A DNA stretch of 64,000 nucleotides from Epiperipatus broadwayi (Eukaryota; Animalia; Onychophora). Positions 6,654 to 63,054 of this stretch are shown piece by piece. The stretch spans positions 28,024,001 to 28,088,000 of the forward strand of contig JAQFVV010000003.1 in the NCBI GenBank assembly GCA_028023455.1. The letters run 5' to 3'. The position numbers were made by a program, and so were the translations under genes. The notes under the pieces were generated by a model, which worked only from the letters and a program-made list of their open reading frames with translations, ran no database searches and was not told the DNA's origin. Positions within the stretch are counted from its first letter, which is position 1. Every line of letters starts with the position of its first letter.

Positions 6654-6727
6654 CTGCTTTTGTTCCATCCAACGCGTGGCATCCGACATGTTCTGAAACT
6701 CCACAAAAGCAAATCCGCGGGATGTAC
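6654..6727 (-). CDS. RBM5: RBM5/RBM10-like coding exon 6 (RNP1 of RRM1)
   Basis: TGTGCAG|GT...CAG|GTGTAA; 74 nt, phase 1/0; (G)TSRGFAFVEFQNMSDATRWMEQKQ. Confidence 0.93.
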
Positions 6728-23691: not shown

Positions 23692-23960
23692 ATGGCTACT
23701 AGAGGGTTGCATTAGATCCTAAGATCTAGGTGCAGTACTCTCAGATTCAAGGCTCCTCACTGACGAAGGCCTCAGAAACTAGTCTGGGGATATTGGATGA
23801 GTAGGCACTAGATGGAGATTTTATGCACAAGCCTTCTGGCATCCATTGATTACTCTAGCTTGCTGTGTGTGGCAATACGTATAGCGAGTTTTGCCTGTTT
23901 TAAAACAGTTATAAGCATAAGAGGTGGTGGTCAGGTGATGTTTGTTGGCATTATACAAGT
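23692..23960 (+). mobile_element. Hammerhead-bearing non-coding repeat (retrozyme/PLE pLTR-like), copy A
   Basis: Closely similar to 49217-49407 and 44260-44510; contains TCCTCA-CTGACGA-AGGCCTCA-GAAA-CTAG-TC-TGGGGA (23754-23790). Confidence 0.75.
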
Positions 23961-24614: not shown

Positions 24615-24839
24615 ATGTTCCTCAGTTATATGCTGTGCCAAATTCCTTAACATGATAGTATTATTTGGTTGTTCTTCTCTCCAACTGGTACGATCCCTAT
24701 CTCTTTCCCGTTCTCTTTCTCTCTCTCTATCACGGTCACGATCTCTTATTTCCCGATCATAGCTACGGCTTTCATAATTCCTTTCACTATGATAGTCAGC
24801 ATCATATTCTTCATATCTATAGTCATCATAATCACTTCT
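24615..24839 (-). CDS. RBM5: RBM5/RBM10-like coding exon 4 (RD/RE-rich, start of RRM1)
   Basis: TTGCAG|AGA...CAT|GTAAGT; 225 nt, phase 0/0; ...WREEQPNNTIMLRNLAQHITEEH. Confidence 0.92.
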
Positions 24840-25409: not shown

Positions 25410-27850
25410 TACCATCATTAATTTCATCCACTATAAATCCATTACACAATAAAGATATATCCAAGTTTATACAGGTTCTCTATCAACAGCTATTCATCTT
25501 CACAATATTCTATCAAACTACCTTACTTCATCCATGCATTTTGTCCATGGCATCTTTCTAAGTTTTTCCAATCTCAAGTTTCATTTAAAAACTTTCACCT
25601 ATACATCTATTATGACCATGTGATGTTTAGTGATCTATTTTAAGAATATGTCCCGTCTAGCTCCATTTCACTCAATTCTTTTAATAATGTCAGTAAAATT
25701 GTCCTCATCCATGAATTTTGTTTTCAATCTTTTCATATTATTCTTAGCATATATATCTCTCTCCATATTTCATCGAGTGATCTGAAAGTCTTTGAATAGC
25801 TCTTAAGTCTCCAAGTCTCAGATACAAAAAAACTTATTATATATTAATATATCAATTTATTTAACTTTTAATATGAAAAAGCACTCCAAGCTTAATTCTA
25901 TGTTTAATTTCATCCATTATGTTTTCATTTGCATTAATAATCTGAGCAAGATATTTGTAGTTATTAATTTGTAGTTCGTGATTATCAATCATTTTTTCCC
26001 TAGAAAAATCCATTAAGATTAGACTTATTTGAAAGATTATTTGTAAAAATCATAGCCCCTGAAATAATTAAATAATATCCATTATCTTTTTTCCCCATAA
26101 CTTCTCATTTTAATCCACAAAATACAGGTACAATAAATTGTGGAAATATGGAACCACTCTATCATATACTCTTTTCAATGTTAATTTATTTAATATACCA
26201 TGTAATCTAACAACTACTGATACAATTGCATAAATATTCTTCATAATAACAATATCTTAGTTCTATAACTCTATGATACAAAGTTTTAATCAAAACAAAA
26301 ATTACATAAGTCGAATGCTTTTTCACAATTTTCATACACAAAGCATAATGGCAATTCATATTCACTGGTCTTTTCTAGAATCTCTCCATACATAGACGTG
26401 ATCCACTATGTTAAATTCATTTTTAAATCCAGAATGTTGGTTAGAATCTAAGGTTCGTTGTAAACAAGTTTTAATTATCTTGTAGATTTTGTATAGAACT
26501 AATGGTATAAGTCTGTAATTTCTAATATCTTTATCATTCTCAAATATCAATATTACTAATGCATTCTTCCACTCACCTGGTATATGATTTTGTCAACACT
26601 TGTATCTATTTCTTTCTCTGCTTCTTTTAAAATAATAACTTTATCATTTCCTAGAACTTTTTCCTTTCCTATAAATTCAATTTACATCTAATTTCTACAT
26701 TTAAAATACTCAGCAAATCAGAAGATGCAATAAGAGTAGGGAATATTTTATTTTCTTGTTCTTTATTACTTACTATACAATACTTTCACACATGTCATCT
26801 CTCCTAATATCAAGATGTTTTATATTTTGATAAATTATAAGAACTATTCTGTTATCTTGTTCTTTATTATTACATAATTTTTTCACATATACCATAATGT
26901 CAACTCTCTTTTCATTCAACATCAATATGTTTAACAATTTTCATACTTTTATGCTCTTCTATGCTTTCCTTGCCATTCGCAATTATATTTTCTTATATTA
27001 CTGTTGACATTTTTTCTTACCATTTTACAAAATTAGATATTCAATTCTTAATGAATCACTTTTTTTTTTCCCATTTATTGGTAAATTGCTTTTTTTTTTG
27101 ATAGCAAACCACCATTTAAGTTTTAACATTTTACAAGTTCTAATTTAAATTCTTAGGAATACAATTTAAAAATGTTATTTGGTCTGATCAAAAGCATTTT
27201 ATACTTCCATCACAGATAATTTCTATTAATTTGAGTAACTAATCCTGCCATTTTAAAATTCACAATATTATACCTCCATTATTTTTAATGAAATTTCTCC
27301 TCACCAAATCCAACAATGTCCAATTTAATATTAGATACTTCTTTTCCAATACATGCAATCTTTCTTCACTTGAAAGTGACTTGCAGTTCTGATAACTATA
27401 TAAAAACTAATGAAATAGCTGCCCAGGTCCTAGCACTCTCTACATTCCAATGTCAATCACAGCTTTGGTTGAAAACTTTACAAACTAGGAACTAAAACTT
27501 GTAATTTAGTTGTGTGCCATAATTATCAATATCTATCTAAAACAAAAAAATTGGATCACACATATTCATTCTGCTTTCAGAAAAAAAAAGCAATTGAAAA
27601 GATAGACTATGATGTTTCTTGATAATCTTAAATATAGAGATAAAAATCCAATAAACCCATTGACTGATGAATGGTGATAAACAGCTCATGCATTTTTATT
27701 TATCATATAAATAATCACACAACAACTGCTGTAAATGACAAGAACGTATGTAATGGATATTAGGAATTTGCTCTATTTGGTTCCTTTAAGGCCTTAAACA
27801 AAAATTAGGGTCTTCTTTCAATTAAAAGTCAACTCCTTTCTACACCTTTA
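25410..27850 (-). mobile_element. Older, internally deleted RTE LINE copy including a decayed 5' UTR
   Basis: DKDIRNYRLIPLVLYKIYK...LQRTLD matches the intact neighbour; 27700-27850 is homologous to the neighbour's 5' UTR (31985-32125). Confidence 0.85.
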
Positions 27851-28937
27851 TTTTTATTAAATAATATTAAATTCAGACATCCTTAGAAACTAATTGCTAA
27901 CATTTAAAATATATTTTAACAATATAATTTCAAATACTGTTTAAAAACCATGCTAATTTTTAATCTCAAAAAATTTAAATATAAAGATAGATCTACTTTT
28001 GCATAGTCATCAGTAATTTTAATACATTCTAACTTTTATGTTTATTAGACTAATTTAATATCAAAAATTTATTTTTTTGCAATATTTGTTCTTATGAAAG
28101 AGAAAATTTTATAATTGTATATTTTTCTTTAAAACGGAAGTACATATATCCTGTTAAATTATTCAATGCTATATTCTACCATGTTTTTATTACGTATTAA
28201 TTAATCTTCATGACCAAAATTAACTTTTTTAAAAATACGAGTTCACTCCATTTAAATCATTATTTAATATTTATATATTAATAATAAAGCATTAAAGTTA
28301 TTTCTTTTATTTCCAATAATTTAATAAAATTTCAAAAAAGACTTTATATCACTGTAATTAAAATAACTAATGATTGACCAAGCCCTGAACAGTCATATAG
28401 AACTATAATTACTTGGATAACAAATTTCAATTTCAAAAACTTAAAATGTTTTCAAATTTTGGACTGAATATGAAAAAGTATTAATATTTCATATTATAAA
28501 AGTGAAAAATTCTAATGCTTCCCACTATGGATGATTTAAAATTAGTATGGCATCAAGTTTAGTACTTTGTTATCTCTTGAAAAATTTATACAATAGTTAT
28601 CTCAACTGTAGTCATAATTAACTATAATTTATAATGACAATTTATAGTGGAAAAAGACTAATTAAAAACTATATACTCATTTTTTAAAATAATAGACCTC
28701 CTATTTTAATTTAAAATGAAATCTTTTATTACTAAATAGCTAAAAAAAATACATTATCTATACATTTCTCAGTACAAGATATTGTTCTCTGTTCAACGAT
28801 ATTTTCACTTTTCCACAATCATGGGCAATATATAATCATCATCATCAACCATTATCAATCCACTGCAGGATGAAGGTCTCTCCAAGTTTAATCCATCTTC
28901 TCCGATCTTTAGCTTCTCTTTTCCACAACACCCCTGC

Positions 28938-31799
28938 TCATTTTCTTATTTCATCCATCCATCTCACATGTGGTCTCTTTCTGGGTCTTTTACAATCTCT
29001 TGGAATCCAGTTTAAAATTTCAATTGTCCATCTATTATCATTTCTTCTAGCAATATGTCCAGCCCAACTCCATTTCAATCTTTTAATTTTTTCAATAAGG
29101 TCAGTAACACCTGTTTGTTGTCTTACCCATACATTGTGTTTTCGATCTCTTCTTGTTACTCCCAACATACATCTCTCCATACTCCTTTGAGTGGTCTGAA
29201 GTCTCTGTATTGCTCTTCTATTAAGTGTCCAAGTCTCAGATCCATAAGTAAGAACTGGTAAAACACATTTGTTAAAAACCATTCTTTTCAAACACATAGG
29301 CATATTTCCTTTTAGTATCAAGTTATTTCTACCAAAAGCACTCCAACCAAGTTTAATTCTATGATTAATTTCCTCCATTATGTTTCCATCTGTATTAATA
29401 ATCTGACCTAGGTATTTGTAACTGTTAACTTCTTCTAATTCTTCATAATCAATCTTTATTTTCATATTTTGAGCAAATCGATTAAATATTACTTTAGTCT
29501 TTTTAACATTTATCTTTAGTCCTACTTTTCTACTTTCATCTGCTAACTCCTGCAACATTTCCTGCAGCTCTGAAGCATTATTTGCAAAAACAACTACATC
29601 ATCTGCAAAATCTAAATGACTTAAATACTCTCCATTTACTTTCATTCCTTTAGTTTCCCATTTTAATCCACAAAATACTTCTTGCAGCACTGCTGTAAAA
29701 CGTTTTGGAGATATGGAGTCACCTTGTCTTACACCTTTCTCAATGTTGATTTTTCCAGTATCATTATGTAATCTAATGGTTGCTGTTGCATTTTTATAAA
29801 TATTCTTTAAAATATGACAATATCCTGGATCTATACCTTGATGATCCAATGCTTTAATCACTGAAGAAATGTGTATAGAATCGAATGCCTTTTCATAATC
29901 TACAAATCCAAAACATAATGACAACTCATATTCATTTGTCCTTTCTATGACTTCTCTCAATACCTGGATATGATCTATTGTACTAAAACCACTTTTAAAT
30001 CCAGCTTGTTCTCTTGGTTGGTGGAAATCCAAAGTTCTCTGTAGACGAGTTGTAATTATCTTGGTAAAAATTTTATATAAAACTGATAAAAGGCTGACAG
30101 GTCTGTAATTTCTAATATCTTCTTTATCACCTTTTTTAAATATTAATATTATTACTGCATTCTTCCAATCTTCCGGTACATCTTTATCATTTAGACATTT
30201 GGTATATAACTTTGCTAAAATTGTTTCTATTTCTTCACCTCCTTCTTTTAATATATCAATTATAATTCCATCATTTCCTGGAGCCTTTCCTTTCTTCATA
30301 CATTTAATTGCATGTCTCACTTCTTCATTTAAAATTCTGGGCAATTCAGAAGATGTAATAGATATAGGAGGTACTTGTTCTTTATTACTATATAATTCTT
30401 GATAAAAATCTTCTACCAATTTCACGATGTCATCTCTCTTTTTAGTAATAATTCCATCTTTTTTTCTTATTGCAGATATAAATTGCCTACCAATACCAAA
30501 ATGTTGTTTAACATTCTTGAGACTTTTATTGTCTTCTACAGCTTTCCTTGCTATTTCACAGTTATACTTTCTTATATCATTTTCAACTTTTTTCCGTACC
30601 ATTTTACAAAATTCGAGATATTCAATTCTTTTTAATACATCATTTTTGTATATCTTCATATTCCTTCTTTTCTTCATAAATTCTCTAGTCTCAGTAGAAA
30701 TTTTATTAGTCAATTGCTGCTTTTTTCTACCAGTTATCTTTGTTGCAGTTTTTAAAAGTGTATCAGTTATTTTCATATTAATTTCATTCAAATCTGAATC
30801 ATGTTCAAAATCTAACACTTGAAACCTATTTGTAAGTTCTAATTTAAATTCATTAGAATGTTTCTGAAGATTAGGAACATCAACTGTAAATATTGTTTTT
30901 CTCAATAATTTTTGTCTCTCTAGTTTTACATTAACACGTAACTTACACCTTACTAATCGATGATCACTTCCTGTGTTAAATTTATTAAGAACATTACAAT
31001 CTTGAAATATGTATTTCCTGTTAGTCAAAATATAATCCAATTCTGCTGTACCTTCATTTGGATGCTTCCATGTCCATTTCCTTTTAACATTTTTCTCAAA
31101 AAATGAATTCATAATATAAAGTTTTTCTTTTTCTGCAAACTCCACAAGTCTATGTCCTCTCTCATTTCTATTACCATAACCAAAATTACCTACAGCAATT
31201 TCATCTTTCATTTGTCTACCAATTCTAGCATTAAAGTCTCCCATAACAATTTTAAAATGTTGTTTACTCTGATCAAAAGCCTTTTGTACATCCATATAAA
31301 AATCTTCTACTGCTTCATCACTATGAGAACTTGTTGGGGCATAAACCTGAATTATCTGCATTTGGTATCTGCTATTAAGTTGTATAACTAATCTTGCAAC
31401 TCTGTCCGATACACCATCAATCTCCACAATATTGTTCTTCCACTTTTTATTTATAATGAATCCTACTCCACTTGTATTTCCAATATGTGTGCCTTTATAA
31501 TAGAGTATATGACCACTTTTTAAATCAATTGTTTCTTCACATTTTCTTCTAACTTCACAAAGTCCAATAATGTCCCATTTAATATAAGACAATTCTTCTT
31601 CTAATTCTTGCAATCTTCCTTCACTTGAAAGTGATCTGCAATTGTAAGTACCTAAATAAAAAGTCGTCATCAAATGGCAGCCTGGGTCCACAATCAGGGG
31701 ATTCTTAGCACCCTCCGCCTTCGGCCACCAACCACTGCCTTGGTTGGTGACTTTACAGCCTCCTGGAAATAAGGGCCATGCTTTATTTTTGTCTGTCAT
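28938..31799 (-). CDS. RTE APE endonuclease-reverse transcriptase ORF (953 aa)
   Basis: GTYNCRSL, DIIGLCEVR, VMGDFNA, GSDHRLV (APE); NYRPVSLL, GVRQGDSISP, FADD (RT). The TGA at 28938-28940 looks premature: the frame continues AGVLWKREAKDRRRWIKLGETFILQWIDNG*. Confidence 0.95.
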   Translation of the reverse strand: MTDKNKAWPLFPGGCKVTNQGSGWWPKAEGAKNPLIVDPGCHLMTTFYLGTYNCRSLSSEGRLQELEEELSYIKWDIIGLCEVRRKCEETIDLKSGHILYYKGTHIGNTSGVGFIINKKWKNNIVEIDGVSDRVARLVIQLNSRYQMQIIQVYAPTSSHSDEAVEDFYMDVQKAFDQSKQHFKIVMGDFNARIGRQMKDEIAVGNFGYGNRNERGHRLVEFAEKEKLYIMNSFFEKNVKRKWTWKHPNEGTAELDYILTNRKYIFQDCNVLNKFNTGSDHRLVRCKLRVNVKLERQKLLRKTIFTVDVPNLQKHSNEFKLELTNRFQVLDFEHDSDLNEINMKITDTLLKTATKITGRKKQQLTNKISTETREFMKKRRNMKIYKNDVLKRIEYLEFCKMVRKKVENDIRKYNCEIARKAVEDNKSLKNVKQHFGIGRQFISAIRKKDGIITKKRDDIVKLVEDFYQELYSNKEQVPPISITSSELPRILNEEVRHAIKCMKKGKAPGNDGIIIDILKEGGEEIETILAKLYTKCLNDKDVPEDWKNAVIILIFKKGDKEDIRNYRPVSLLSVLYKIFTKIITTRLQRTLDFHQPREQAGFKSGFSTIDHIQVLREVIERTNEYELSLCFGFVDYEKAFDSIHISSVIKALDHQGIDPGYCHILKNIYKNATATIRLHNDTGKINIEKGVRQGDSISPKRFTAVLQEVFCGLKWETKGMKVNGEYLSHLDFADDVVVFANNASELQEMLQELADESRKVGLKINVKKTKVIFNRFAQNMKIKIDYEELEEVNSYKYLGQIINTDGNIMEEINHRIKLGWSAFGRNNLILKGNMPMCLKRMVFNKCVLPVLTYGSETWTLNRRAIQRLQTTQRSMERCMLGVTRRDRKHNVWVRQQTGVTDLIEKIKRLKWSWAGHIARRNDNRWTIEILNWIPRDCKRPRKRPHVRWMDEIRK

Positions 31800-31959
31800 A
31801 ATTGTATATATGAATTGGAAAAATATTTATCATTTACACAAACATTCATTCTGCCTTATCAGGCACTGAGAAGAAAGACCATGGTGTTTCTCGATCTTAA
31901 ACTCAGAGGTAAAAAGCCAATAAACTCACCACGCTGGCTAATGCGTGTTGGTGAGCAGC

Positions 31960-32125
31960 CCATCCATGTTCGTATACTATATGAATAATCACATAGTAAT
32001 AACAGCTGCAACGACAAGAACGTATGGAGTGGACATTAGGAATTTGCCCTGCTCGGTTCCTTTAAGGCCTCCAAGAGGAATCAAAGGGTCTCCTTTCAGT
32101 TAATAGCAAACTCCTTTCTGCAGCC
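31960..32125 (-). ncRNA. HDV/CPEB3-like self-cleaving ribozyme at the RTE 5' end
   Basis: P1 GGCTGCA(32125-32119)/TGCAGCT(32010-32004) with G.U at position 1; P2 TCCAT(32028-32024)/ATGGA(31967-31963); P3 ACG/CGT with L3 TTCTTGT; P4 TACTATGTGA/TCATATAGTA; J4/2 CGAA with C at 31972. Confidence 0.8.
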
Positions 32126-34699
32126 AATATATAATAGTTTACATAATATATATTGATGACCTAAAGATTCAATCAGAATTGAGAAATTAGTCTGATTTTT
32201 TTAAAAAAAAACTCAACTACTCTCTCCAAATCGTAATGAAAATTTCTATGTTCAATGCATGTCCAGTAATTATAAAATTTTCCCTATTACCACTATAACA
32301 TCTAGGTAAATTCAAGATAACCAAACAAGCAAACACAAATATAAAAATTAGATTGATTAATCCTGAAAATATATCCATATTGTTCTACTTATGTACACCA
32401 AAACAAAGAAACAGGACTCTTCTAGTTCACCAAATTCAGTACATAATATTAACACAATTTTTTTTTGTTAATTACATGATTCATTACAAATTATTTTAAA
32501 TAGCACAAGATTTTATAATATATTGTATTTATTTATAAATTATAGCATCCCTGGAATGTATATTCAATCCCAAAATATGAAAAAATAGATGTAATAAAAA
32601 CATGAATCTTTAATACATCTCTTAAAAATAAAAGAAAAATCAAGCTCACAGTTGAGCCATTTATTTTAATAATGGCCCTTTCTTTATTAATCATAAAGTA
32701 GTGAATATATACAAATAAAATTTTTGACAGGATTTAAATTAACACCATTCTTTAAATTTTCATCAGATATACTCCAAATACATATTGGTCAAATAAATAT
32801 TGAATAAACTTATAGATGTTAATATTCAAAATGACTATGAATGATATCTTTACAATATATGCTTCTAATATTTAATCTATAAACATTTCTTTATACACGC
32901 CAAGATGAAAATTTTTACATTTTACAGCAACCATAACCTAAAGAGTTAAATTATATATTGTGTCAACCAGTATAATGTCAAGCAGAATTTTTTTTTATTT
33001 TCTAATGTTTTTATAGGAAATGTGTTAGTCTAAGAGCATTGAAATAGGTTGCTATGACAATGAAATGTTAGAGCAAGAAATACGTTATGATTGCAACAAA
33101 TTTATAAATTAATTTTATTCATTTAAAACACATATGTAAATAATAAAATTAACAATTTTGATAGTTATTGTTTCTTTAGATCATAAACATTATATATAAA
33201 TATTTAATGTCCTAAACGTATATGTTATTTATAAATATGTAATATTTAAATTGTGAGAATGTAGTAAATTAAAAGTATTATTAGTGTTTTAAAGTGTGAA
33301 TATTATTTGTTATATGTAATGATTATAAAAAATTTATTATTATTATTATTAAACATATATAACGAGTTATCTTGTTTGGAAAGGAGAGTATTCATTAAAT
33401 GTTTAAATTTATCCAGCACATGTGGAGTGATCCCTAATTATTATTATTGTACAAGGAATTTTTAAGTATGGATCACAGTTATTTTGGTATTAGAGTGAAT
33501 AAAGAGCAAAACCTTAATTTTGGAAACGAAAATATCAATTATATGGTTATAAATATGACTAAATGATCCAAATTCACTCTCTAACATCCTGCTACGTTTA
33601 TATATATATTTATTTATTTTAAAAGTATTTGCTTAATAACTTCAAAATGATGTAGAAATTATATTTGTCCAAGAAACTGAACTGGATTGCCAAATATTTG
33701 TCAAAAGGAGAAAAGTAATTTATAGCATTCAAATTCATGTCAAAGGAGAAAAATAATTTATAACATTCAAATTCATTTTAATATTTCCCTATTTAAAAAT
33801 GATTATCACATGTGAACAAAACATTTTAATAAATAAACATTGAAGCTGACAATATACTACTGTATATAAGAATTGTTTCTATCTAGATATTTTATAATAT
33901 CAATGGAATATTGTAACAGGATTTAAATCAATTTATTTCTATATTGTATTGTTGTAAATGGAGACCGGTATCTGTTTATGCAGAATGCCATTACGATATT
34001 AAATGTTTGCTAAATAAGGGATAAAAATAATACTTCAAGAATATTGGAATTTAATATACACATTGTTTTGAATAACTGTTTACGATACTTTTATCCTGTT
34101 TGGATCAGTGAATATCACCAAATTATAGCTCACGAAAAAGTCATTGGAATTATTGCATTTCTTTGAAGTGCCATGCAGGAGGATTGAATTCAAGTTATAT
34201 GTTAATATGTTTTACTTATGTATTTATTTATATATTTTATAAATATTATTGATGACTATATTTTAAGTTAGTTTGTTTTATATGTGTAAAATAAAAGAAA
34301 GTTAAATTTGGTTTAAATTTATATCCTAAATTTTAATGATTAAAACTTTGATTTGAAATAAATATTTATCTGTTGACTGCAAATTACTTTACGATATACA
34401 TTGTAAGTATTGAAAATGTGAAAGGATTGTATTGTAACAATTACTCATTGATGTTTTATTTGGAAAATAAGGTGAATGAATAAACAAACATTATTATTAG
34501 TTTATCTTAATCAATTACTTATAGTTATCATTCTTATATTTTAAAGTGTGCGTGTGCAGCAACATTTTTGCTGTATAAGCACCAGTTTTTATTAATATTA
34601 ATTTAGATGAATCTATTTCATATTTAATTAGAGTGTATGTCACAAAGATTTATTATCTATTTGTAATTTTTTTATATTTATCGTTAATAAATTTTTAAT

Positions 34700-42179: not shown

Positions 42180-42720
42180 AACAAAAATATCTTTAAATGG
42201 TGAATGGATTTCAGGTGTGGAGTTTTTCTAATTTTTAAGATTTCTTGGTATCCAAGTTGTCCATCTACTGCCAGATCCAGTCCATTTTTATTGAAGCCTC
42301 TTAATTCTTTCAATGATGTCGGTTATTTTTTCATCCAGATATTTAGTTTTTAATCCTCCTTGTTATAATCAACATACATATCTACATATTTCAGTGTATG
42401 ACTAAAGATAACTATATTGATCTTTATTACACATCTAAGCACTAGATCCATACATAAGCATTGATAAACTTATTTCTTAAAAACATTCTTTTAAAGAAAT
42501 AAATACATTTCTTGAATTATTTAGAAAACATATCCACATGCATATGTATACTATTTCTAACAAATGCATTCCATTCACTTTTAATTCAATGACTAATTAA
42601 ATTCATTGTTTCCAACTGTTAATAATCTGACTAAGATATTTGTAGAGTTGTCAGTTATAATAATTCATTATCATAAGTCTATTTCTTTTTAAAAAGATAA
42701 TGAATATTATTTTAGCCCTT
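42180..42720 (-). mobile_element. Degenerate RTE 3' fragment
   Basis: Similar to 28950-29450 (RWTTWIPR-like region and RT C-terminus). Confidence 0.55.
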
Positions 42721-42826
42721 TTAGCATTTACTTTAAGTTCTACAAATTCACTGACAAATTAATAGTAATAAGTAGATTATAATGCTGAATTTTACAATAG
42801 TATTTATTTTTCAAGCCATTACTTAC

Positions 42827-42938
42827 TTCGTATCTGTAATCTCTTTCACGTTCTCTCCGTTCTCTTGGCACTCTGATTAAAGAACGATCTCTTCCTCGTT
42901 CTCGGTAGCGCTCCCGGGACCTCTCTCTCCGTCTGTCT
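42827..42938 (-). CDS. RBM5: RBM5/RBM10-like coding exon 3 (RE/RS-rich)
   Basis: TTACAG|A...GAA|GTAAGT; 112 nt, phase 2/0; DRRRERSRERYRERGRDRSLIRVPRERRERERDYRYE. Confidence 0.88.
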
Positions 42939-43503: not shown

Positions 43504-44560
43504 AAACAGAGATAAAACTCTCCATACAGTAATGTCACTCAGTGCAAGCCAGAATAATGAGAAAGCAAGATGTGTGCATAAAATCCCTATCTAGTGCCCA
43601 TTAATTCAATACTCCCAGACTACTTTCTAGCTTGTTGCTTTCATCAGTGAGGAGCCTTAGATCTGTGAGTACTGCGCACCTAGATCTTAAGGATCTAATG
43701 CAACCCTCTAGCAGCCACCTTTTTAGTTAATCATAAAGAATAAAGCTAGGAGTTCAAAATTGAAAACAATAACATTTTCAATCCAAGCTCATTTAGTTGT
43801 ATAGTCACATAGATCTGAACTCAGTTCAGTATCTATATATTTTAGTGTCTTTAATATCCATATTCACCATTATTTTATTGAGCAGGATTGGTATTAAATC
43901 ACTAAACATCATATGATTACTATTTCTTATGCTTGCCAAAGTAGTTAAAAGGTTTGTGCATAAAATCCCTATCTAGTGCTTACTCATCAAATATCTCCAG
44001 TTTAGATTATAGCTTGTGGCTTTTCCATCAATGAAGAGCCTTTGATTAGATCTTAGAATCCAATGCAACCCTCTAGCCACCTTTTACCCTTTAGTTAACT
44101 ATAAAGCTACGAATCCAAAATTGAACAATATTTTCAATCCAAGCTCATTTGCTTGCATAGTCATATAGATCTGAATTCAAATTATACTAGCAAATCAGTT
44201 TGGATTGAAAATATGTTTTCAATTTTGGATTCGTAGCTTTATAGTTAACTAAAAAGGTAAAAGGTGACTGCAAGAGGTAGCATTGGATCCTAAGATCTAA
44301 GTGCAGTGCTCTCAGATCCAAAGCTCCTCACTGATGAAAGCCACAAGCTAGAAGCTAGTCTGGAATAGGGATTTTAGACACAAACCTTCTTGCAGCCATT
44401 GATTACTCTGGCTTGCACTGAGTGGCACTACTGTATGGCCCATTGTGCCTGTTTAAACAGCTTAAGCAAGCTAAGAAATAATGATCATGTGATGTTTAGT
44501 GGTTTAATGCAATTATTATAATTTAAGTTGAACTGTAAATAGAAAAAAATCAAGGTGAAT
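43504..44560. mobile_element. Cluster of three hammerhead-repeat copies: two head-to-tail on minus (B, C) and one inverted on plus (D)
   Basis: B core CTGATGA at 43647-43641; C decayed core at 44031-44025; D core at 44331-44337; inversion junction near 44190. Confidence 0.8.
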
Positions 44561-45911: not shown

Positions 45912-46004
45912 TTTTCTCTATCTCTCTCTCTATCTCGTCTGCTGTCACTTAATCCTACACGAGGATCATACAATGGATCATCATCATAAGTTGAACCCAT
46001 ATCT
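45912..46004 (-). CDS. RBM5: RBM5/RBM10-like coding exon 2
   Basis: TTTTTCAG|AGAT ATG...AA|GTAAGT; 93 nt; DMGSTYDDDPLYDPRVGLSDSRRDRERDRE(K). The phase matches exon 3. Confidence 0.85.
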
Positions 46005-49216: not shown

Positions 49217-49407
49217 CCTAAGATCTAGGTGCAGTGCTCTCAGATCCAAGGCTCCTCACTGACGAAGGCCACAAGTCAGAAACTAGTCTGGGGATATTGG
49301 ATGAATAGGCACTAGATGGGGATTTTATGCACAAGCCTTCTGGCATCCATTGATTACTCTAGCTTGCTGAGTGTGGCAATACGTATAGTGAGTTTTGCCT
49401 GTTTTAA
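49217..49407 (+). mobile_element. Hammerhead-bearing repeat, copy E (best-preserved ribozyme)
   Basis: Homologous to copies A-D; ends at CCTGTTTTAA. Confidence 0.8.
49253..49294 (+). ncRNA. Type I hammerhead ribozyme with minimal palindromic stem III
   Basis: TCCTCA-CTGACGA(49259-49265)-A-GGC-CACAA-GTC-A-GAAA(49279-49282)-CTAG-TC-TGGGGA; predicted cleavage after 49288. Confidence 0.7.
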
Positions 49408-62399: not shown

Positions 62400-63054
62400 A
62401 TCTCAGTACTTAGTAATTCGGTAATCAATACACTGAGAGCTTTAAGACTATGCAATGAGAGAAATGTCTGTTAAATATAAGATTAACTCACTGCTTTCAC
62501 ATATATAGTTTAATCTTAACTGTTTTCTATGCTCATTGTTCGCAATCTTTTTAATTTGATTGCAATTGCTGGAATCCATTTGATAATTTCCATGAACATA
62601 TGGCATAGGACTTGAGCACCTATTCGCATTTTAGCATTTTTATTTTCATGGTTTGTTCTACAGTTCAAATCTGGTTTCTTACTAACCACACCTAGATAGA
62701 TCTTATTAGATTTTATTTTTAGCTGGTTCACTTTAATCACTGTAAAACCCAAGTGATTGAATAAGTCATGACCTAATAAATTGCTATGTTTCCAGCAGAC
62801 ACAACAAGAGGCAAATAAATTGTTTTATTAAGGATAGTAACTTTAACTTTTGTTTGACCCAAACATAATATTTGATTGCCTTGATAATTAGTAATCAATC
62901 TCCTGGTAGGATGGAAGTGATCATTACTTTTTCTATTAATGATAGCCCACATATTTTTTAAAACAATGGACACTGCAGTTCCAGGATCCAGTTCCACTGT
63001 TATTGGCATATTATTAATAATAATTATGCTTATGAAAACCAAACCAGTACTCAA
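62400..63054 (-). pseudogene. Gypsy-type LTR retrotransposon protease/pol remnant
   Basis: INNMPITVELDPGTAVSIV (retropepsin DTG decayed to DPG), followed by an LLGHDLF-like motif. Confidence 0.7.

Follow-up and report, generated by a model that had tools for sequence, protein, structure and literature searches.

The CPEB3 ribozyme of mammals, positioned within an intron in sense orientation, has a core in which L3 comprises 7 nt (UUCNNGU), P1.1 is one C-G pair, J1/4 reads GU and J4/2 reads CGAA. Transcription of the promoter-less RTE, R2 and L1Tc elements takes place as part of longer RNAs, from which the elements are freed by a 5' HDV-like ribozyme (PMC3774820; PMC6765202). [quoted passage not shown] The processing of retrotransposon 5' ends by the HDV-like fold, including in RTE elements and including variants with a structured J1/2, is already known from the literature of 2009-2016.

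In the case of the window, the whole stretch of 64,000 nucleotides from the onychophoran Epiperipatus broadwayi analysed here, positions 32125..31960 on the minus strand very probably constitute an HDV-like self-cleaving ribozyme, with which an intact RTE non-LTR retrotransposon opens and which accounts for its initial 166 nt. Among described systems it comes closest to the drz-Agam-2 family, which is likewise associated with RTE elements and has a structured J1/2.

Fold, carrier and boundaries

The region 32300..31800 was read on the minus strand, with the RNA position calculated as 32126 minus the window coordinate. Positions 32125..31960 can be folded into an HDV-like nested double pseudoknot of 166 nt with the parts in the order P1, P2, P3, L3, P3', P1', J1/4, P4, J4/2 and P2' (Table 1). 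This bears out the earlier note, which had described on this strand all parts in canonical order, namely a 7-bp P1 with a G1.U wobble, a J1/2 insert of about 90 nt (86-90 nt as measured), a P2 of 5 bp extendable to 8 bp, a 3-bp P3 closing a 7-nt L3, a single G for P1.1, a 10-bp P4 and the CGAA of J4/2. The wobble at the base of P1 is formed by G 32125 with T 32004, and the core of P2 by TCCAT (32028-32024) with ATGGA (31967-31963), to which CCA/TGG adds 3 bp over a bulged C. The only possible P1.1 pair connects the L3 C at 32018 (C108) with G 32003.

The J1/2 domain forms a helix rod of approximately 78 nt with its own conserved motifs, which starts 3 bases past P1, stops 5 bases short of P2 and is closed by P1.2 (32115-32105 with 32048-32038). 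RNAfold, unaided, recovers P1, the rod-like J1/2, P3 and P4 in the minimum free energy structure (-50.9 kcal/mol, z -2.9, none of 200 shuffles being as good); P2 and P1.1 are absent from this structure because both are pseudoknots. The catalytic C (31972), the G1.U wobble, P1.1 and the CGAA of J4/2 are all intact in the copy of the window. All sequence features required for an HDV-like ribozyme are present and, as described below, kept with compensatory changes in relatives, which supports the prediction of self-cleavage.

Table 1. Features of the ribozyme, its carrier element and the surrounding exon-like segments in window coordinates
Feature	Position	Strand	Remarks
P1 5' strand GGCTGCA	32119..32125	-	G1 = 32125, predicted first base after cleavage
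P1 3' strand TGCAGCT	32004..32010	-	7 bp with GGCTGCA; U at 32004 opposite G1
J1/2 peripheral domain, rod of four helices	32033..32118	-	MFE fold; alifold with L002
P2 5' strand CCA-c-TCCAT	32024..32032	-	
P2 3' strand ATGGATGG, ribozyme 3' end	31960..31967	-	
P3 (ACG/CGT) and 7-nt L3 TTCTTGT (32020-32014)	32011..32023	-	3-bp P3 closes L3
J1/4 GTTAT	31999..32003	-	G 32003 makes the single P1.1 pair
P4 hairpin, 10 bp, 4-nt loop	31975..31998	-	31998-31989 with 31984-31975 in RNAfold MFE
J4/2 TACGAAC, including CGAA	31968..31974	-	C 31972 corresponds to catalytic C75 of HDV
Second conserved 5'-UTR structure, H-type pseudoknot	31915..31956	-	hairpin directly after ribozyme P2
RTE ORF	28938..31799	-	953 aa, intact; AP endonuclease, then reverse transcriptase
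TSD, 5' copy ATTATATATT (plus strand AATATATAAT)	32126..32135	-	directly upstream of G1 (32125)
Element 3' end	28827..28850	-	(TGA)n tail to 28837, then 3' TSD copy 28836-28827
Copy B, second, older, degraded RTE	~27846..25424	-	same orientation, about 1 kb downstream of first
Dead ribozyme homologue at head of copy B	27686..27846	-	catalytic C now T
N-terminal MGS... segment	near 45985	-	motif scan
RD/RS-rich segment	near 42913	-	motif scan
Start of RRM1 (TIMLRNL...)	near 24746	-	motif scan
RNP1 segment (SRGFAFVEF)	near 6719	-	Pfam RRM_1 match, 21.3 bits, E 2.5e-4

The same 10-mer, ATTATATATT, is found at 32135-32126 and behind the 3' tail; for two of the ten bases an assignment to the (TGA)n tail is equally possible, so that the target site duplication (TSD) measures 8-10 bp. 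The insertion therefore extends over 32125..28837 of the minus strand (about 3.3 kb) and opens with the ribozyme G1, its first base being the first base of the predicted cleavage product; the adjacency of G1 and the TSD, which had been claimed from the letters, is thus confirmed. The element has the features of the RTE clade, a single ORF with APE and reverse transcriptase (Pfam Exo_endo_phos and RVT_1), a short simple-repeat 3' tail and a TSD. The nearest proteins, at no more than 59% identity, are RTE proteins from insects and metagenomes; the closest of them possess the same endonuclease and reverse transcriptase domains, two are named endonuclease-reverse transcriptase, and the named ones are from insects.

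Copy B is 65-69% identical to the first copy and shows internal deletions and no long ORF; another RTE fragment is located at 42335-42743. A separate repeat family with CTGAYGA...GAAAC-like motifs occupies 23718-23903, 44289-44431 and 49217-49407, with inverted copies at 43573-44023. The window has 26.6% GC and a CpG observed/expected ratio of 0.43 (0.29 within the RTE element).

Directly after the ribozyme, the 5' UTR contains a second conserved structure, a hairpin CTCACC...GGTGAG with an inner CGC/GCG, the loop of which (AGCCA, 31939-31935) pairs with TGGCT (31919-31915) located 16 nt downstream. Both pairings are kept with compensatory changes in the loci L001, L002, L003, L013 and L047, in the last of which both sides are expanded to GCTGAC/GTCAGC, and are degraded in copy B. 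The pseudoknot may have a role in translation start or protein binding. A tentative extension of this thought, which we would not yet favour, is that ribozyme and pseudoknot form a two-part 5' module that links the 5' processing of an RNA lacking a cap with its cap-independent translation or with the recruitment of the element's own protein, the intronic sense copy in addition cutting the pre-mRNA of the RBM5/10-like gene in which it lies.

Relatives, covariation and curated models

Relatives were collected as the contigs encoding the two closest proteins (L001 and L002, whole elements) and as 80 further loci found by scanning metagenome contigs with an N-terminal protein alignment, from which L004, L023, L047, L043 and L013 were selected by nhmmer and a covariance model. 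L001 and L002 are preceded by (TA)n and start with GGGCTGC and GGCTGC, respectively, and the folds in the relatives' contigs generally begin directly after microsatellite flanks. The eight relatives parsed have a common architecture of P2a, ACC/ACG, TTCNNGT(T), GGT/CGT, P1', GTT, P4, ACGAAC and P2b, with a P1' of 6-7 nt ending in T and an L3 of 7-8 nt. The GTT of J1/4 is identical in all eight, and ACGAAC in J4/2 is kept, C included, in seven of them.

The helices vary in sequence and remain paired. P1 occurs as GGCTGCA/TGCAGCT, GGGCTGC/GCAGCCT, GATCCCT/AGGGGTT and GGGGGGG/CCCCCCT, each version complementary, P3 as ACG/CGT or, by a compensatory swap, ACC/GGT. The P2 pairs among relatives include TCCGC/GCGGA, TCCAC/GTGGA, CCATGCCC/GGGCATGG and GCCGCACC/GGTGCGGC, and the extended 5' strands CCAcTCCAT, CCAaTCCGC, CCTaTCCAC, CCATGCCC, CCTGGCCT and GCCGCACC are each accompanied by their complement. 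P4 is variable in length and missing from L001. The base of P1 is G.U or G-C in L001, L002, L013, L031 and L043 and is lost in the L047 lineage.

In this sister lineage, which consists of L004, L023 and L047 and comes from a single metagenome, the position homologous to G1 is preceded by a 47-nt leader (L047:487-533, L004:218-264, L023:about 620-655) composed of two CCGGTAAACCNGGAC-like units; two of the three loci begin with GGCCGG directly after the microsatellite, and P1 pairs at only five of seven positions. Therefore, not every relative begins at the homologous G. The lineage may have a weakened or decayed ribozyme, may have acquired a leader or promoter, or may form its 5' end by another route. 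Alternative partners for P1 of the L047 lineage were sought at the true 5' end and elsewhere, none of them convincing; AGGCTTC was rejected as it competes with P1.2.

In the loci L083-L090, a homologous 5' UTR was not found by nhmmer with a three-sequence seed. Two of these, RTE relatives at 52-53% protein identity, display a different, compact HDV-like fold as judged by eye (L085:76-215 and L087:109-end), with P1 ACCCCTCC/GGAGGGGT, P3 GCC/GGC, L3 TCAACGG and a long P4. This fold follows directly after (TA)n, and its +1 base is A, not G.

For the quantification of covariation, a covariance model (R1) comprising the nested helices only (P1, the J1/2 rod and P3, no P2 or P1.1) was seeded with the window and L002, the seed being restricted to two sequences because L001, which is devoid of P4, was misaligned by MAFFT. 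Eight sequences were aligned by this model, and P2 and P1.1 were added afterwards as pseudoknots (alignment A6). In this alignment 90.0% of cells form standard pairs versus 31-44% when partners are slid by 1-3 columns, 29 of 46 pairs have changed on both sides, those of P2 among them, and none of 500 shuffles attains any of five pairing measures. The helices that had not been part of the model are paired to 87.5% (inner P2), 95.8% (outer P2) and 87.5% (P1.1, C-G in seven of the eight sequences), most failures being due to the decay of copy B and to misalignment of the L043 3' end. Helices 2-6 of J1/2 are paired to 90-96%, and in 19 of 27 pairs both partners have changed. Both the alignment and the explicit parse demonstrate compensatory changes across relatives, P1 and P3 included, on which the earlier reading of the structure had been made to depend.

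In a leave-one-out approach, a second model (R2) was built from six relatives from other assemblies only, with the window sequences excluded. Its match in the window is exactly 32125..31960, end to end, with 135.3 bits, E 2.4e-30 and no non-standard pair, and it also recognises copy B (27846..27686, 44.9 bits, E 1e-8). A marginal match at 62643-62788 (E 0.12) showed no homology upon alignment, and a covariance-model match in L071 (E 0.22) was spurious.

The comparison with the Rfam HDV-like and CPEB3 models, which the earlier note had proposed as a check, turned out otherwise. At gathering thresholds Rfam has no match in the whole window. The core aligns in register with drz-agam-1 (RF01787) at 16.1 bits, below the gathering score of 37, and drz-agam-2-2 (RF01788) spans the whole region at 10.6 bits, below its gathering score of 38; in the permissive search (E up to 10) these drz-agam matches stand sub-threshold amid noise, and the models of CPEB3 (RF00622) and HDV (RF00094) have no match here. 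By score, the ribozyme is outside every curated Rfam family, and a seed of its own would be needed.

Genomic copies, host gene and the readings weighed

Assembler contigs from four runs were compared with 31700-32500. The DNA run of the source organism contributes 42,215 contigs with a match to this region; their summed depth is 1.56 million over 32105-32131 and 2,390 over 32132-32158, a decrease of more than 600-fold, and stays below 1,000 in each bin beyond. Altogether 427 contigs exit the element into unlike AT-rich flanks (agreement 0.45), at 32125 (154), 32126 (176) and 32127 (97), a spread of 1-2 bases that chance matches in AT-rich flanks would give. RNA-labelled runs from this and other organisms show the same edge; as these are contigs, they are silent on RNA ends. 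The predicted cleavage site coincides with the 5' end of the genomic copies, and the expectation that full-length copies start at the same G is borne out by hundreds of contigs. The further proposal that the ribozyme set the 5' end of the insertion stands with respect to the RNA of a progenitor copy, the cleavage of which would have produced this end, and falls with respect to cleavage by the present copy, which inherited the ribozyme.

Where genomic copies commonly differ within the ribozyme, nearly all of the variants are CpG transitions. The catalytic C is affected by plus-strand G>A at 31972 in 36% of the summed depth, its neighbour 31971 in 30%, and the CpG of P3' at 32013/32012 is variant in 22% and 38%; CpG decay has removed the catalytic C from about one in three genomic copies. 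CpG transitions also killed the ribozyme of copy B, in which ACGAAC has become ATAAAA and the CGT of P3 CAT, with one base deleted in P1. At all variable ribozyme positions recorded, the window's copy has the base of the family majority; it is therefore considered, unlike the dead copy B, young and competent by sequence.

As a more general observation, CpG transitions at 20-38% of depth are the main differences among RTE copies which, together with the low CpG ratio, suggests germline methylation of RTE repeats. Also, 52-68% of the 31-mers of the 326-nt 5' UTR (31800-32125) occur in runs under more than 10 different organism labels, so near-identical copies exist under many labels. They could stem from species that are closely related, from horizontal spread or from contamination common to these runs.

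A motif scan identified exon-like segments of an RBM5/10-like gene on the minus strand (Table 1), among them TIMLRNLAQHITEE and SRGFAFVEFQNMSDATRWME, the latter with the Pfam RRM_1 match; Pfam detected no host-gene domains in ten neighbouring ORFs. These segments flank both RTE copies on the strand of the elements themselves, so that the two copies are sense insertions between the 42.9-kb and 24.7-kb segments, and the window's RTE should therefore be co-transcribed with the host gene. We know of no promoter in the RTE element. It would be transcribed inside a longer RNA, here probably the pre-mRNA of the RBM5/10-like gene, and the nested double pseudoknot (P1, P1.1, P2, P3, P4) would fold during RNA synthesis, with the P1.2 rod of J1/2 holding P1 and P2 together. 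C 31972 and a bound metal ion would then catalyse the attack of the 2'-OH of the upstream nucleotide, with a cut just 5' of G 32125. The freed RNA would begin at the first base of the element and retain the ribozyme, so that every full-length cDNA copy regenerates it. Directly demonstrated are the fold, its conservation with covariation and the shared 5' end of genomic copies; the cleavage chemistry, the co-transcription with the host gene and the present-day activity are inferred from the family.

How far do other readings account for these observations? Covariation proves a conserved fold and not catalysis, and a non-catalytic 5'-UTR element, such as a protein-binding site or translation element, combined with a precise internal promoter at G1 would likewise yield uniform 5' ends; the sub-threshold scores of the Rfam ribozyme models and the adjoining pseudoknot, which demonstrates that this UTR carries structure with other roles, are in line with such an arrangement. 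We nevertheless regard it as unlikely, as the most conserved nucleotides are unpaired ones needed only for catalysis (ACGAAC in J4/2, the G of J1/4, UUC..GU in L3) together with the G1.U wobble, the topology is that of the full double pseudoknot, and RTE ribozymes of like kind cleave at the 5' end of their element, as cited in PMC3774820. Chance had to be taken seriously on other grounds. A loose descriptor, which required P1, P2 and P3 to be perfect apart from wobbles, U as the first base of L3, a C in J4/2 and no more than 200 nt for J1/2, has about 10 matches over both strands of the AT-rich (27% GC) window and, on the relatives' loci, 18 matches on the wrong strand versus 7 on the right strand. 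The motif alone therefore proves little, and the case rests on comparison. A fortuitous arrangement of short complementary segments in AT-rich DNA is refuted by the strong covariation of the eight-sequence alignment and the leave-one-out match at the exact coordinates, the position at the TSD-defined end of the element also speaking against it, and its probability is close to nil.

A different question is whether a ribozyme that worked in the progenitor is still at work in the window, where it might be a silent fossil, competent by sequence and either untranscribed or non-cleaving in vivo. Most copies of this huge RTE family are decaying, CpG having been lost from the catalytic CG and from P3 in approximately 30-38% of depth; the neighbour, copy B, is dead, and the CpG ratio of 0.29 suggests methylation of the element. 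Set against this are the majority bases of the ribozyme and the intact 953-aa ORF, as well as the sense position between RBM5/10-like exons, which lets transcription be expected; we judge a fossil to be very unlikely. The reading to be preferred is that of a self-cleaving HDV-like ribozyme at the head of the RTE element.

Comparison with described ribozymes

The significance of the locus is mainly at the level of the family. What is known about HDV-like ribozymes is unchanged by this case, which explains the precise 5' end of a very abundant, promoter-less RTE family in the genome. New is a covariation-backed seed for a ribozyme subfamily missed by Rfam (at most 16 bits versus 135 with the relatives' model), and the conserved pseudoknot directly after the ribozyme is of specialist interest. 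With respect to the host, intact copies are located in sense inside introns, where cleavage would sever the host pre-mRNA.

[quoted passage not shown] Sequence similarity, on the other hand, is not useful (10.6 bits versus the gathering score of 38), the J1/2 of the window is a four-helix rod of about 78 nt with motifs of its own, and the two ribozymes differ in host organism and in RTE lineage, the nearest proteins reaching no more than 59% identity.

In comparison with CPEB3 (RF00622), the form of L3, the single P1.1 pair, GU in J1/4, CGAA in J4/2 and the sense intronic position are alike, and the L3 of L047, TTCACGT, is the one given for CPEB3 in the earlier note. The CPEB3 ribozyme, however, is without a J1/2 insert, single-copy and outside of mobile elements, and its Rfam model has no match even at E 10; the likeness is a resemblance of the core and not membership.

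The R2 ribozyme (Eickbush and Eickbush; PMC3774820) is equally located at the 5' end of a promoter-less non-LTR element, which it frees from a co-transcript, and varies in the size of J1/2 and P4. R2 is a member of another clade, uses a restriction-like endonuclease and has its fixed target in 28S rDNA, and many of its lineages cut 9-36 nt upstream in host sequence (PMC3774820), whereas here the predicted cut is at the first base of the element. With the L1Tc ribozyme of Trypanosoma cruzi and the genomic and antigenomic HDV ribozymes, the common denominator is the fold class and the definition of an RNA 5' end (PMC6765202), although these are compact, devoid of a J1/2 domain and found in unrelated carriers. 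Cumulatively, these comparisons place the ribozyme of the window in the class of retrotransposon ribozymes described in 2009-2011, with drz-Agam-2 as its closest known case.
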